The translations under genes were made by a program, and so were the position numbers. This document shows positions 2,317 through 12,984 of a DNA stretch of 64,000 bases, piece after piece (the first letter of the stretch is position 1; each line of letters begins with the position of its first letter). The stretch is from Anthoceros angustus. Lineage: Eukaryota > Plantae > Anthocerotophyta. Location of the stretch: positions 620,001 through 684,000 of the forward strand of contig VJWM01000126.1 in assembly GCA_010909165.1 (NCBI GenBank), written 5' to 3'. Below the pieces are notes generated by a model. That model searched no databases. It was not told where the DNA came from and saw only the letters and a list, made by a program, of their open reading frames with translations.

Positions 2317-3253
2317 GCGAGAGGTGGTGAGTTCACTCTCGCAATTTCTTTCTCGCAATGTTCTTAATTGGAAACAGAATAATCAGAAAAAAGAACATTT
2401 CCAATCCAAGGACTAATACAGACCTTTCCATTTCATATGTGTCAAACATCATGGAGGTACGATTGATTACATATACAAATTATAATTAATATGAAATAGA
2501 TATATATACAAATTATAATTATTATGGAATAGATATATACAAATTATTTGAGCTGATGCATAAGTCATGATGTGGCATGAAATTAACTTTATCCCTTCAA
2601 CTTGAAGATGTTGTATACATTATGATGTGCTGTAACATTGACATAGTCATGGCGAAAATCAAGCACACCACTCCAAGATGTTGTGAATATTATGTGAAAT
2701 TGAGTTAGTTGTGGTGAAAACCAAGTAGTACACAAACTTCGAGATGAGTGTTGTCATATTGCATCTAATTAGTTGTTCACTTTCAAAGCTCTTTCACTTC
2801 ACTTTCAAGGCAATTAGACAAATTTAACACAAACTCTGCAAGTGGTAGTCATGTTTTGTATTCCTTGTTGTTTATTTTGATAAGATTCTAAAAACTATAT
2901 ATTTTCTTTCAAGCTAACTTAAAATTATCTTTATAAATAAATAAATAAATAAACAAATCTATATTAATATTAAATAATAATATACATAATCATCTTCATT
3001 GATTCAATGAACGAATTGAAGTCCATCATATTTGAAACACGAGGTCCCGACGTACTTCTCTCCCGTGTCCTTGATGGTCTTCCTTGAACGCGCTGTATGG
3101 TTCGTGGGTTTAGTTGATCAATAAATGAAAGCTTGTTTTTGTATTACGGCGATTGTGGGAAATGGGTCTGACGCAAGTGAAATCCCAACTCTGCGACGAC
3201 AGAGCGGGTGCGCCTAGGCGGGCCCTTAGCTCGTCGAGGCTTTGGGAAGGAAC

Positions 3254-6200
3254 ATGTTCTGGAGCTGTGCACGCACGGGACTTGCTTTGACGGTGCATTT
3301 GATTTGCAGGGCGGGTGGCAGTCTAGGCCAGGTCGGTGGGGAAATTGAAGCATTGGAGAGTCTGGTACAGCGAGGATTTTATGTGTCCGTCGCACTCTTC
3401 TGTGGTGTTCTTAAGAGGTGTGTCGAGCAGAGGGATGAGGCTGTTGGCAGGCGTGTTCATGCTCTTACTCTTGAAACTGGGTTAGAGTCTTGTACATTCC
3501 TGGGCAACAACATTATACGGATGTATGCTTCTCTTGGGAGATTGCATGAGGCGTTCCAGGTGTTTACGGACCTGGCTGCACCGAATACGTTTTCCTGGGC
3601 AATCATCATTTTGGCACAGGCTAAGCTGGGAGAGCCTGCGCAGGTTATAAAGTTGTATCAGCAGATGCGACACTTGACTGTGAAGCCAACCAACTATGTT
3701 CTTGTGGCTGTCCTCAAAGCATGCACCAGCGAGGCAGATTTGGCATCTGGGAAGCAGGTCCATGCGGACATTTTGGAAACTGAGGTTGAGCCGAATGTGT
3801 TTGTCTGCAACTGCCTTGTGGACATGTATGCAAAATGTGGGAGCTTGAAGGATGCTCGCAGAGTGTTTGATGGAGTTGCCAGGAGAGATGTGGTTTCATG
3901 GAATGCCATGATCGCTGGATACACTCAGAGTGGGCGGGGGCAAGAGGCCCTCACCCTGTATGCAGATATGGTACAGGAGGGCATCATTTCAGCCAGCCAT
4001 GTGACATTTGGGTGCGTCATTAAAGCCTGTGCTAGCCTTGGTGAGCTACATCGAGGGAAGCAGCTGCACCTAGAGATTCAGACAAGGGGCATGGAATCTG
4101 ATGTTGGTGTTGGCAGTAGCCTGGTAGACATGTATGTGAAATGTGGCAGTTTGGAGGATGCACGGAGAGCTTTTGATAGTTTGCCGGTGAAAGATGTGGT
4201 GACATGGACAGCTATGATTGCAGGGTATGCACAGCATGGGCGTGGTCATGAGGCTCTGTCTCTTTATGGGAGAATGCAGCATGAGGGCGTCACTCCAGCT
4301 AATCATGTTACATTTGTGTGCCTCCTGAATGCATGTGCCAGCATCAAAGCGTTAGACGCAGGCAGGGAGCTCCACTCCAAGGTTCAGGCGAGAGGACTGG
4401 AAGCTGATGTGGTGGTCGGTAACAGTTTGGTGGACATGTATGCCAAATGCGGCAGCTTAGAGGATGCTAGGAGAGTATTTGACCATTTGCCCACAAAAGA
4501 TTTTGTGACATGGAATGCCATGGTTGCAGGGTACACTGAGCAAGGTCGTGGACAGGAAGCCCTGACTCTTTATGGAAGGATGAAACAACTGGGTATTCCT
4601 CTGATTGATCGAGTTACCTTTGTGTGTCTCCTGAAAGCATGCTCCAGTGTCGGGGCTGTACGTGAGGGGAAGGAACTTCATGACCAGATCCGGGAACAAG
4701 GACTGGAAACCGATGTGGTTGTTGCCAATTGCTTGGTGGATATGTATGTCAAATGTGGGAGCTTAGAAGATGCCCGCAGAGTGTTCGACATTTTGCCAAC
4801 AAGAAATGTCATAACATGGACATCAATGATTGCAGGATATGCCCAGCAGGGCCTTGGTCAGGAAGCCCTCAATGTATATGCACGCATGCAAGAGGAGAAC
4901 ATCACGCCAGCTAATCTAGTCACATTTGCCTGCCTGCTGAAAGCTTGTAGCAGCACAGGAGCTTTACGTCGGGGCAAGGAACTCCATCTTCAGATTCAAG
5001 AGAGAGGGCTAGAAGCTGATGTTGTCGTTGGTAACAGCCTGGTGGACATGTATGCAAAATGTGGTAGCATGGAGGATGCAAGCAGAGTGTTTGAAAGATT
5101 GCCAAGAAAAGATGCGGTGACTTGGACGGCCATGATTGCAGGATATGCAGAGGAAGGGCTTGGTCAAGATGCCCTTGCTCTTTATGCAAGGATGCAACAG
5201 GAGGGCATTAGACCAGCTGATCGTGCCATGTTCGTCTGCCTCTTGAAATCATGTGCCAGTGTAGGAGCTCTGCTCCAGGGGAAGGAGCTGCATCTGCAGA
5301 TTCGGTCAGCAGGACTGGAATCGGATGAAGTTGTTGGCATCAGCCTGTTGGACATGTATGCAAAATGTGGCAGCTTAGATGATGCTCGCAATGTCTTTGA
5401 CAGACTGCCCACTAGGAATGTCGTGGCCTGGACTGCGTTCATAAATGGGTTTGCACAACATAATCAGGGCCGGATGGGATTGCAGTGCTTTGAAGAAATG
5501 CTTCAGTATGGGGTGGAGCCTAATGAAGCTACATTCCTGTGTGTACTGGCGGCCTGCAGTCACGAAGGCCTGGTGCATGAGGGTCGACACTATTTCAAGC
5601 TGATGGTGGAGGCCCATGGAATTAATCCCAGTGTATGTCACCACAATTGCATGGTTGACCTTCTTGGACGGGCAGGCCATCTACATGAGGCTGAAACCAT
5701 GCTGCAGACTATGCCGTTCAAAGCCAACTGTGTAGGGTGGATGTCTTTGCTCAATGCATGCAAGAGCCATGGTGATGTAGAGCGTGGAAGACGTTGCTTT
5801 GACCTCCTTATCAGATTAGATCCTCAAAACGCAGCTCCCTATGTCTTCATGGCAAGTATGTATGCAAACGTCCACATGTGGTCAGATGTAAGCAGGATCG
5901 AAACCCTGAGAAGGTCAGCAGGTGCATGCAAGAAACCTGCAAGGGCCTGGATTGAGGTGAACAGCAAGGTTCACACGTTTGCTGTGGGGCAAGAAAGGGA
6001 TGACGTCTCGTCAAAGCTGAAGAGTGTTAATCTCCAATTGGAGGAGGAAGCAGGCCTGTACTCATCTCCGGAGGTGCTAGACGCTCTCTCTGGTCGGGGA
6101 AAGGGAGATGCTTTGTGTGGACATGCCGAGAAGCTTGCATTGGCATACGGGCTCTTGAACACCCCAGATGGTATGGCTTTGCTAGTCACCAAGAACCTTC

Positions 6201-6331
6201 GCATGTGCAATGACTGCCACAATGGCACCAAGGCCATGTCGAGAATTGAGAAGAGGGAAATCATTGTCAGAGACGCACACCGTGTTCACCGTTTCGTGGA
6301 TGGTTCTTGTTCTTGCGGAGATGGGCACTGA
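3254..6331 (+). CDS. Intact intronless PLS-class PPR protein (23 repeats, E1-E2) with DYW:KP domain ending DGH; candidate organellar RNA-editing factor
   Basis: First ATG at 3254. Regular L-S-P triplets, KKPARAWIEV (KPAxA), CGHAEKLA, KNLRMCNDCH, RVHRFVDGSCSCGDGH*. Confidence 0.93.
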   Translation: MFWSCARTGLALTVHLICRAGGSLGQVGGEIEALESLVQRGFYVSVALFCGVLKRCVEQRDEAVGRRVHALTLETGLESCTFLGNNIIRMYASLGRLHEAFQVFTDLAAPNTFSWAIIILAQAKLGEPAQVIKLYQQMRHLTVKPTNYVLVAVLKACTSEADLASGKQVHADILETEVEPNVFVCNCLVDMYAKCGSLKDARRVFDGVARRDVVSWNAMIAGYTQSGRGQEALTLYADMVQEGIISASHVTFGCVIKACASLGELHRGKQLHLEIQTRGMESDVGVGSSLVDMYVKCGSLEDARRAFDSLPVKDVVTWTAMIAGYAQHGRGHEALSLYGRMQHEGVTPANHVTFVCLLNACASIKALDAGRELHSKVQARGLEADVVVGNSLVDMYAKCGSLEDARRVFDHLPTKDFVTWNAMVAGYTEQGRGQEALTLYGRMKQLGIPLIDRVTFVCLLKACSSVGAVREGKELHDQIREQGLETDVVVANCLVDMYVKCGSLEDARRVFDILPTRNVITWTSMIAGYAQQGLGQEALNVYARMQEENITPANLVTFACLLKACSSTGALRRGKELHLQIQERGLEADVVVGNSLVDMYAKCGSMEDASRVFERLPRKDAVTWTAMIAGYAEEGLGQDALALYARMQQEGIRPADRAMFVCLLKSCASVGALLQGKELHLQIRSAGLESDEVVGISLLDMYAKCGSLDDARNVFDRLPTRNVVAWTAFINGFAQHNQGRMGLQCFEEMLQYGVEPNEATFLCVLAACSHEGLVHEGRHYFKLMVEAHGINPSVCHHNCMVDLLGRAGHLHEAETMLQTMPFKANCVGWMSLLNACKSHGDVERGRRCFDLLIRLDPQNAAPYVFMASMYANVHMWSDVSRIETLRRSAGACKKPARAWIEVNSKVHTFAVGQERDDVSSKLKSVNLQLEEEAGLYSSPEVLDALSGRGKGDALCGHAEKLALAYGLLNTPDGMALLVTKNLRMCNDCHNGTKAMSRIEKREIIVRDAHRVHRFVDGSCSCGDGH

Positions 6332-9921: not shown

Positions 9922-10761
9922 AGCTCAGGAGCAGCTGGGTCCGGAGGTGGGACAGCAACGGCAGAGGGGAAGCAGCAGATCGCCGTTCGCGGAGCGCAAG
10001 TCCATGGACCGAGTCCAACGGGACATCGAATGGGGAGAGACCTAGGTCACAACAGAGCAGCAAGTGTGAAACCCGGTACCTCCCTCTCTGGCTCCAACCC
10101 GGTGGGTGGGTTGCCCCTGAAACTCGGTGGGTCGTGTTGGGTAGACCCCTGTGGCAGGCAGGGTCCGGGAGTGGGGGAGAGGGGCCGCGCGGGGCCTAGC
10201 CTGGCCTGGGTAAGCATGCTTTCTGCGCCTGTAATGCACCTGCCGTTTTGAGACCAAGTCCTGTAATGTCGTCTGCTCCTGTGCATTCCATTGTGCATCC
10301 CGCTGGCCGCATTCTGCATTCAGAATGTTGCTGCATTTGAAGAGTCTACCAAGCGCATGTGTCTCTGCCTGCCTGCCTGCTGCTTCGGCTGCTGCATCTG
10401 GCATGAACGCGTTCTCACCTTGCTGGATCCTGGGAGGAAACCTGGGCCCCACGGCTGGACAATGCGGGCTGAGGGAGAGCCGGCCCAAGGAACATGACCC
10501 AAATTCTGCGAGGAGGGAGTCTCCGGGCTGCCCACTTGCCGGCCTCCCGGCCCCTTCTTCGCAGCAATTGACTGTTGCTTGGATGCGCAGGCAAGGTTTG
10601 CATTCTACGCACCCCCTGCGCCAGGGCCAGCAACTGCTCTAGCTCAAGTTCCAGTTCCAGCTCCAGCTCCTGGCGGGTATTTCCAGGTCGCCCGTCGCAG
10701 CCCAAGTCGGTGATGCTCACCTGGGAGGTGAGGAGGAGAGCCTGCAGAAGGAGGTTTAGTC

Positions 10762-12984
10762 ATGATGCAGCAGCAGCGGCCTCGCCAAGTGAGGCAAGCA
10801 GGGAAGGGCCGGGGCCCGGGCCCAGAGGAGGACTGGATGAAGCCCTCTCTGGCTTACCCGCCAGGATTCACTGACAGGGAGTATGACTTCGAGTATGATG
10901 AGGCTCTGCCTGGGGTTACTGCACCCAACATGCTGGCGCAGCGAGCCATCAAGTATGGCTCCTCCACTGAGCACTCGCAGGACTGGGGAGCGGACAGGAG
11001 CTTGAGGTTGGAACGCCTGTGGATCGAAAGTGCCTCCAGCTTGGAAGTGTCATCCCCAGAGCAGGAGCATGAGAATGAGCATTCGCAGACTGATGCTCAC
11101 GGTGGTCGGCCCACTGAAGTGTCCGCGGGTTCCAGGCACGAGAGTCGGAGTCCGGTGTTTGTGGAGACCGTCACAAATTCCTCCCGTGCAGCAGTTGGCA
11201 GCCCAAGGATCAGTGCCCGTTGGATGTCGTGGCTGTGTTCCATGAGACGCCCCAAGCACAGTGCTGCTGTGGCTCCTCGCTTGGGTGGTAGCTCCCCTGA
11301 GGTTGTGGAAGTAGAATGTGCACCAGATGATGCGTCAACAGGACAGGGCACACCATCTAAGCCAGAAGAGTTCCTGCCTCGCCGGCAAGGGGTCGAAGGA
11401 GGAGCCGCTGCCGTTGGGAATGAGGAAGTCGTTCTGCAAGTGCCCCTGGGCATGATAGCCTTGGCTTGGCTTGATAGCCAACCTCTGCTTCTTTCTTCAG
11501 GTTTTCATTCCTATGCTTCACGCTCCTTCACCATTCAGGAATTTGTGCCGGAGAGCACAAGAGTGATCCACCATGGTTGCCTTCACAGGTGGGTTCCGGT
11601 TGTAGTCTCTTCATCAACTCTCCATGACCTAGCTGCTGCTTCTTCTTGATATTCACATGTTTGACGTGCTGCCCTTACAGGGTGGTAATGCCTCCAGGTC
11701 ATGTGGGTATTGCATGGGTGGACGGCCGGGCTGAAATCCTGGAACCAGGAGTTTTCGAACGATCCTGTATAACATTCTCATACTCTGCTTCGAATGATCA
11801 GAAGCTGTCAGACAAGGAGCTTGTCCTGGGACCTTATAGGATAATAGTAGTGAACGAAGATGAGGTCGGAATAAAGTTCTCCAATCGAAAGCCACAGGTG
11901 CTGCATTGTGGCCGGTATGTTGTCTGCTCCACACTCAGTCCAATGCCCTGTGGTGAAAGATTACAAAGCAGCTCGGGGCCGTGAACAGGAAAAGGTTCTT
12001 GTCTGTCTTTGTTAGATTGCTCAGGCAATGTGTGTGGTGCGAGAGTGGTCAGGCAGACTAGGTGTGGCAACTTACTGGTGTGTGATGTGGCTTGGTGTTG
12101 CATGACTGCAGGCACATGATAGACATATCGAAAGCAGAAGTATTTGCAGGATTCGAGTCCCTTTTGTGTAGGAGAAGCAGGATCTCAGAGCTCTTAGCAA
12201 CCACTGCAGACGACATGAGAGTTGAAGCCCAGCTTTCCTTCCACTGGCAGATCGGAGCGGAGGATGCCGCTGCTGCTCGTGTGGCAAACGTTGCTGATGT
12301 AGAAGGTGCCGTGTCTGCCAAGTTCCGCCGTGCATTTGCACTGGTGATGTGGTGCTACAAGGGCCGCGATATCGTGGATATGCATGCAAAGAGCGACTTA
12401 TCACATAATGACATGATCCACATCTCCCAGATGTCATCCTCATTTTCTTCGGACATTTCCAAAGAGTGCCTGGAAGTTGTTGTCGATCTTTTCGAAGAGG
12501 TAACCTACACCTGCAGCTGAAGCAGAAGCTTTGCATGCAGGCTGCAGTATGTCTGTCGCTGAGTCTTACAATATTGCTGAGCATGTTTTGTGTCTCCGCA
12601 GGGTTGGACTGTCACATTCTGGGAGGTCCAGTTGGAAAGACTACAACTTTATCTGGATACTCCAGGTCAGTCAACAGACGATCAGATGCAAGCAGATTTA
12701 ACCGATCAAAGCGCAGCTGACAAGGAGACAATGTATCGGCAAAAGAAGAAGGTACAATTCTGTTGAAGCTAGACATCCAACACAAGAACACAGATAACAG
12801 ATCCGTTGCCTGAAATACAGATCCGGTGCCTCGCTTTCCTCCTATCATTTCCCATATTTCTTTAAACCTTTCTAACCTACTGCCTGGTCTGTTTCTTGTC
12901 ACCGTGCTGCACACTTCCCCGCAGGTGCGGATCAGGCTGAACGAAGCCCCTAAAGTGTCTGCATCATCAAGAAGGCGGGGATGA
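10762..12984 (+). CDS. Predicted 552-aa SPFH/Band-7-like protein: disordered N-terminus, three tandem beta repeats, SPFH-like core
   Basis: Exons 10762-11588, 11681-11914, 12112-12499, 12602-12751 and 12925-12984 join in frame with GT-AG introns. Repeats VPLGMIALAWLDSQPLLLSSG, MPPGHVGIAWVDGRAEILEPG and VNEDEVGIKFSNRKPQVLHCG. Core TTADDMRVEAQLSFHWQI...EEGWTVTFWEVQLERLQL. Confidence 0.65.

Follow-up and report, generated by a model that had tools for sequence, protein, structure and literature searches.

Canonical SPFH proteins (prohibitin, HflK/C, erlin, stomatin and flotillin; PF01145) share a tandem core of a β domain, SPFH1, and an α/β domain, SPFH2. In their described architecture SPFH2 is followed by the coiled-coil helices CC1 and CC2 and a C-terminal region, and SPFH1 faces the membrane in erlin and prohibitin (PMC12624060). 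Comparable layouts are found in MVP, where a row of small β modules leads into an SPFH2-type α/β domain, and in the bacterial flagellar stator-associated protein FliL, which is reported to form rings without CC helices (PMC8794807). Here we describe a gene at positions 10762-12984 (plus strand) of a 64,000-nucleotide stretch of Anthoceros angustus DNA (contig VJWM01000126.1, positions 620,001 to 684,000; the window, in what follows). We consider it probable that this nuclear gene is functional and belongs to a small, as yet unnamed family with an SPFH fold, which was found only in the Anthoceros lineage, Selaginella and ferns, has neither anchor nor coils and is old in land plants.

The family has the same SPFH1-SPFH2 core as the canonical proteins and differs from them at both ends: it lacks the anchor (transmembrane helix or hairpin), CC1 and CC2, of which every solved SPFH cage makes its walls and roofs, and the C-terminal cap region, and it adds two β modules, R1 and R2, in front of SPFH1 (R3), together with a long, rapidly evolving and probably disordered N-terminus. 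It is a new architectural variant of SPFH proteins, with R1 and R2 added and the anchor and long helices gone. MVP resembles it in the row of small β modules ahead of the α/β domain and in not being membrane-anchored; in contrast to MVP, the family has three modules rather than nine and neither cap helix nor cap ring, and no long helix follows the α/β domain in the Selaginella model described below. The likeness to FliL lies in an SPFH-type domain without a coiled-coil wall (Z 8.8-9.1 to FliL periplasmic domains), but FliL is bacterial, membrane-anchored and periplasmic, its lone SPFH2-like domain comes without SPFH1 repeats, and our searches found no sequence relation between the two. The first-pass annotation had likened the gene to vacuolins and slipins of amoebae and bacteria. 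A specific kinship is not supported: the likeness seen is that of the generic SPFH fold, the exhaustive exon-3 search found no amoebozoan or bacterial sequence relative, and the structural matches to the SPFH classes are tied. A bacterial cluster named 'putative slipin' does occur among the ESM Atlas neighbours, at a template-modelling (TM) score of 0.44. Vacuolins and slipins keep both the anchor and the C-terminal helices.

Gene model and SPFH core

As the first-pass annotation had proposed, five plus-strand exons join in frame into 552 codons and a stop codon; the rebuilt model has GT-AG borders at all four introns and is laid out as follows.

10762..11427, plus strand: first part of exon 1 (10762-11588); residues 1-222, a low-complexity, probably disordered N-terminal region
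11428..11588, plus strand: last part of exon 1; β module R1, residues 223-276, collinear with homologues
11589..11680, plus strand: intron 1; 92 nt, GT-AG, phase 2
11681..11914, plus strand: exon 2; R2 (nt 11682-11840, residues 277-329), followed by the N-terminal half of R3, the predicted SPFH1
11915..12111, plus strand: intron 2; 197 nt, phase 2, within the Arg codon of G-R-H
12112..12499, plus strand: exon 3; remainder of SPFH1 and most of the α/β domain SPFH2, residues 354-483
12500..12601, plus strand: intron 3; 102 nt, phase 0, after DLFEE
12602..12751, plus strand: exon 4; residues 484-499 (GWTVTFWEVQLERLQL) form the last SPFH2 strand and lead into an acidic tail that ends in KKK
12752..12924, plus strand: intron 4; 173 nt, phase 0, after KKK
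12925..12984, plus strand: exon 5; basic tail VRIRLNEAPKVSASSRRRG at the C-terminus, closed by the stop codon

The SPFH-like core suggested earlier is borne out by fold and, marginally, by Pfam. An AlphaFold2 model of residues 330-645 of the Selaginella orthologue, built with the family alignment, stands in for the window protein. It has a mean predicted local distance difference test score (pLDDT) of 75.8 and comprises about 19 strands in its residues 1-184, followed by helices, a final long strand and a disordered tail. When this model was compared with the PDB by Foldseek, 42 chains were retrieved at E ≤ 1e-3, every one of them SPFH or MVP, with E values of 4e-6 to 1e-4 to the SPFH proteins. 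VIA-align places SPFH1 and SPFH2 at model residues of about 107-281, with prohibitin at Z 12.6 and a root-mean-square deviation (rmsd) of 2.6 over 145 residues, and HflK/C, erlin, stomatin, flotillin and QmcA at Z 10-12. Across the canonical proteins the core superposes at rmsd 2.4-3.4 over about 145-155 residues (Z 10-12.6), and the classes are effectively tied in structural score. Band_7 clusters also appear among the neighbours in language-model features, and a shape search of the ESM Atlas returned diatom and proteobacterial Band_7 clusters at TM 0.44-0.51, which are generic SPFH folds.

Band_7 is likewise the sole recurring Pfam family, matched by 11 of the 16 alignment members at E ≤ 1 (best 3.6e-6). 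These matches are marginal: one homologue, P0005, scores 24.1 bits against a gathering cut-off of 23.6, and another, P0022, has a precomputed PF01145 match. In the homologues the Band_7 match always begins at R3. At the level of predicted structure, the SPFH1-SPFH2 fold is confirmed for the Selaginella orthologue.

Tandem modules, chain ends and the vault comparison

The first-pass annotation had described three V-x2-G-x-V/I-G...L-x2-G repeats. The three repeats are real, starting at residues 223, 277 and 330, while the motif as it was written is only approximate. The pattern is V-x-V-x-x-G/E-x-h-G/A-h-A/K-W/F ... L-x-x-G, and the window repeats read VPLGMIA, PPGHVGI and NEDEVGI, followed by LSSG, LEPG and LHCG. 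R1 and R2, of about 54 residues each, lie ahead of SPFH1. Their family profiles align with each other at P 1.7e-6 and with that of R3 in the same register (P 0.005 for R1 and 0.013 for R2). R3 is SPFH1 according to its Pfam register and the modelled structure, and R1 and R2 appear to have arisen via duplication of the SPFH1 module. R1 is modelled at pLDDT 80-95 in the orthologue, and R1-R2 folded alone reach pLDDT 80.4; this isolated model gave no significant match in Foldseek. By VIA, R1-R2 alone stay below Z 5 throughout, with R1 reaching SPFH1 of prohibitin at 4.7, of QmcA at 4.4 and of HflK at 4.0, and these matches are interleaved with half-cupin matches. A cupin reading was considered and rejected, the Cupin_2 matches being weak (E 0.03-0.13), covering half a barrel only and amounting to generic β-hairpin similarity.

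A Trp residue is invariant in R1 and in R2. Each module also carries one His/Cys motif: HHGCLHR (nt about 11569-11588 plus 11681), SC (about 11763-11768) and GRH (about 11910-11914 plus 12112-12115). Residues H54, H58, C88 and H138, in the numbering of alignment A5, are invariant in nine of nine full-length domains and are also kept in the window and in the orthologue on L001, a 6.2-kb genomic Logan contig from a diverged sister species. This His/His/Cys/His set could form a putative metal site between modules.

A hydrophobic anchor was found in no member of the family, the highest Kyte-Doolittle 19-residue mean being 1.26 and lying inside the β modules, and no member has a hydrophobic stretch in its N-terminus. 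The C-terminus is short, as had been noted from the sequence: beyond the last SPFH2 strand the window protein continues for about 50 residues, the Selaginella protein for about 30, which are disordered, and the fern proteins for about 12-30. Neither the model nor the chain ends show, after SPFH2, the CC1/CC2 helices or the C-terminal region of cage-forming SPFH proteins. The polybasic tail (RQKKK-VRIRL...RRRG) is common to the window and Selaginella only.

The low-complexity N-terminus of about 220 residues was also correctly recognized: the composition of residues 1-222 is skewed towards S, E, A, R, G and P. Local BLAST found no significant match between this region and the Selaginella and fern N-termini, and across the family the N-terminal 160-460 residues are unconserved between lineages; residues 32-173 are about 37% identical to the L001 orthologue. 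In L001 the open frame over exon 1 (L001:3366-4763) encodes 465 residues, against 295 in the window, and owes its greater length to stretches of Gly, Ala and Ser within DNA of 58% GC. Short motifs are nevertheless kept in the L001 N-terminus (FTD..YDFE.DEALPG, LRLE.LWIE and ARWM.WLC..RRP). A short basic/aromatic/Cys motif at window positions 11205-11240 (ARWMSWLCSMRRP) has a counterpart in L001 (ARWMTWLCATRRP) and a looser one in Selaginella (ARMSGWLACRGCCHRP; about residues 225-245 of protein P0002), and ferns have R/K-KGLF(A/G)LL instead. This motif could be a putative amphipathic or lipid-modified membrane contact.

The tandem modules and the missing anchor invite comparison with the vault. 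The family might be a cut-down relative of MVP, in which R1-R3 are vault repeats, the α/β domain is the shoulder and the cap helix has been lost, and thus a relic of an ancestral eukaryotic vault in spore-bearing plants. The top Foldseek matches are indeed MVP chains (325-380 columns, E 1.7e-6), VIA aligns model residues 5-281 collinearly with MVP 322-646, that is R7-R9 and the shoulder (Z 8.7-10, 178-238 residues), five of the 30 language-model neighbours are MVP_shoulder/Vault_3 clusters, and the family, like MVP, has no membrane anchor. Moreover, vaults are thought to have been lost from plants (PMC3762200). However, the SPFH1-SPFH2 part fits canonical SPFH proteins (Z 12.6, rmsd 2.6) more closely than MVP R9 and shoulder (Z 8.9, rmsd 4.3), and the long MVP alignments have rmsd values of 11-12 Å. 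R1-R2 alone reach MVP R6-R7 at Z 3.5 only and had no significant Foldseek match, the cap helix that MVP needs is absent, and Pfam gives a Band_7 match and none to Vault (PF01505), Vault_2-4 (PF17794-6) or MVP_shoulder (PF11978) at E up to 10. We therefore regard descent from MVP as improbable.

Within the SPFH reading, it is possible, and we hold this tentatively, that the protein is a cytosolic or peripheral scaffold rather than an integral membrane protein. The row of three SPFH1-type modules, with Trp in R1 and R2, would dock on a membrane surface or on a partner and could stand in for an integral anchor. SPFH2 would supply lateral contacts of the kind seen in FliL rings or the vault wall, and the probably disordered N-terminus might recruit clients. 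Since coiled coils are lacking, a closed dome would probably be impossible. A bolder idea, to which we assign a low probability, is a soluble and so far unrecognised SPFH assembly in which three SPFH1- or vault-repeat-like modules on a shoulder-type domain would form open rings, sheets or half-shells without coiled coils, as a plant relic or a parallel of the vault wall that persists in hornworts, lycophytes and ferns alone; a metal ion might tie the modules together.

Intron conservation, distribution and origin

The predicted splice model of the window gene holds on homology and conserved intron positions. Each junction is bridged by full-length homologues that are collinear exon by exon (HGxLHR-V, G-R-H, DLFEE-GW and KKK-V). 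In exon 4, L001 is identical over 21 residues and GWS/TVT.W is aligned in all homologues, and VRIRLNE of exon 5 resembles VQIVLTE of Selaginella. For comparison with the window gene, the introns of the Selaginella and Ceratopteris genes were mapped exactly. Two introns have the same place and phase in the window, Selaginella and Ceratopteris: one of phase 2 that splits the Arg codon of G-R-H, and one of phase 0 that follows DLF(E/D)E. A third, of phase 0 and following KKK, is common to the window and Selaginella (RKKK-VQIVLTED), ferns being without this tail. Window intron 1 is missing from Selaginella; in Ceratopteris a different intron lies 22 residues upstream of its position. The intron after DLF(E/D)E measures 102 nt in the window and 64 nt in Selaginella; at the same position the last Ceratopteris intron (L010:3923-15919) is 11,997 nt long. 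In six other genomic contigs the exon-3 frames continue past ...LFEE/LFDE into unrelated sequence starting with V, as expected of a GT donor at that point. A fern-type orthologue, P0003, lies on an intronless, mRNA-like contig of 1840 nt, which points to expression in a relative.

These common introns indicate that the gene had introns before the Anthoceros lineage, Selaginella and ferns split, and they favour vertical descent followed by losses over separate acquisitions. The ancestor of these lineages would already have had at least two, probably three, of the gene's introns. By sequence comparison with L001, the window gene is also under purifying selection: exons are 67-77% identical in DNA and introns do not align, and over 280 codons the proportions of nonsynonymous (pN) and synonymous (pS) differences are 0.13 and 0.84, the latter saturated, for a ratio of 0.16.

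The range of the family was surveyed by an exhaustive phmmer search of 1.84 billion representatives with exon 3 (129 aa) as query, which yielded nine matches, eight of them true relatives. The closest, at 84% identity, is P0001, the exon-3 frame of L001. The matches also include two 'uncharacterized' Selaginella moellendorffii proteins of 645 aa (56% identity over exon 3), a 'hypothetical' Ceratopteris richardii protein of 696 aa, transcript-derived proteins of 442 and 498 aa, and, from ENA and JGI contigs, three fragments of exon 3. With word searches the set grew by two Adiantum proteins of about 737 aa and some further transcripts and fragments. A search with the Selaginella domain returned itself and no other member, so that no full-length protein from the Anthoceros lineage came to light. 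The two Selaginella copies (P0002 and P0010) lie on different scaffolds, share a cluster at 90% identity and do not differ over the exon-3 region; they may represent haplotypes or recent paralogues. No paralogue was found by local BLAST within the window. Literature searches found no description of the family, whose database entries are called only 'uncharacterized' or 'hypothetical'.

In the exon-3 tree, which has no outgroup, the window, L001 and Selaginella group together (100/99) against a fern-type clade that includes the metagenome fragments. Six low-coverage metagenome contigs with a fern-type exon 3 (L002-L007; ENA ERZ1034373/75/95 and ERZ27227283/92, JGI 3300047537) are plant genomic DNA within environmental assemblies and form their own subclade (100/98) inside the fern-type group. 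Neither the exon-3 phmmer search nor the word searches found a relative in seed plants, mosses, liverworts, algae, protists or prokaryotes, and a pattern scan across 185,579 prokaryotic genomes likewise yielded no relative. Collectively, the sequences are best read as an old land-plant gene family that seed plants, and probably also mosses and liverworts, have lost.

Of the two origins offered by the first-pass annotation, an old family lost in seed plants fits this range and the common introns better than a horizontal acquisition that later gained introns. The latter view, broadened to a transfer of an SPFH gene from bacteria or protists or to passage from plant to plant among hornworts, lycophytes and ferns, could account for the patchy range and for the grouping of the window clade with Selaginella against ferns in the unrooted tree, and the nearest ESM Atlas shapes are diatom and proteobacterial clusters. 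However, those shapes are generic folds, no prokaryotic or protist relative emerged from the exhaustive search or, for prokaryotes, from the genome scan, and the two introns common to all three lineages, with a third common to the window and Selaginella, agree in place and phase. The introns must thus predate the lineage split, or the gene moved as genomic plant DNA. We consider horizontal origin distinctly improbable.

The surroundings of the gene were also compared. Two neighbouring features and the spacer between start codons are as follows.

3242-6331, plus strand: long intronless PPR open frame, 1029 aa
6666-9922, minus strand: intact, multi-exon CDC48/p97 gene with CDC48_N, CDC48_2 and two AAA domains (D1 and D2); ATG at 9922
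9923..10761, no strand: 840-bp spacer between the divergent CDC48 and SPFH-gene start codons

The divergent arrangement with CDC48 had been reported correctly, with the start codons at 9922 (minus) and 10762 (plus) lying 840 bp apart, and the spacer is presumed to be a shared promoter region. The first CDC48 exon ends at a GTAAGT donor. We considered the adjacency to CDC48 as functional evidence and set it aside as incidental, because L001 has no CDC48 upstream, and in Selaginella it is a bHLH gene and a GH18 gene that adjoin the orthologue.

Remaining alternatives and significance

It could also be argued that the family is a fast-evolving member of a standard plant SPFH class (HIR, stomatin-like, prohibitin, erlin-like or flotillin-like) whose anchor and helices have disappeared, since its fold matches all classes about equally and Pfam recognizes the general Band_7 model only. 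Against this, the architecture departs from every class at both ends, and the exhaustive exon-3 search retrieved no standard SPFH protein at E ≤ 1e-3. Similarly, among PDB sequences phmmer with exon 3 retrieved no SPFH chain, and family profiles no SPFH or MVP chain even at E 10, the exhaustive search and the profile searches both being limited in reach. The relatives returned by the homologue survey are Selaginella and fern proteins, transcripts, fragments and L001. These results agree with the first-pass annotation, which had set the gene apart from the usual plant SPFH classes, and support placing the family outside them at the sequence level; a disguised member of a standard class seems to us distinctly improbable. 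That the locus is mis-modelled or decaying, a set of chance frames or a pseudogene, is very improbable and already largely refuted, for although RNA support in A. angustus is lacking and exon-wise domain scans are blank, the frame stays open through five exons, comparison with L001, at saturated synonymous sites, gives a pN/pS of 0.16, and the model is backed by the collinearity of full-length homologues and by conserved intron positions.

We therefore return to the reading of a functional, old land-plant SPFH-fold gene, against which several points weigh. The splice junctions in A. angustus are supported by homology rather than by RNA and expression in this species is presumed, and Pfam and NCBIfam scans of the window exons taken singly gave no meaningful match. 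The fold evidence comes from a model of the orthologue in Selaginella and from an alignment that is shallow, at 16 rows, not from the joined window protein. The likeness of R1 and R2 to SPFH1 is weak, with Z below 5, cupins mixed in and hhalign P values of only 0.005-0.013. Finally, the absences from other lineages come from one single-sequence search with 129 residues and from word-limited searches, which may miss remoter relatives. The fold check called for by the first-pass annotation did yield an SPFH fold, as predicted for the Selaginella orthologue.

In all solved SPFH assemblies, long helices form domes and, the vault excepted, there is a membrane anchor. Anthoceros and Ceratopteris are transformable spore-plant models. 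The distribution and common introns of the family make it a clear-cut example of a gene that is old in land plants and has disappeared from seed plants, and by keeping the core, dropping the anchor and helices and apparently tripling the membrane-facing SPFH1, it raises the question of what an SPFH core can do alone.

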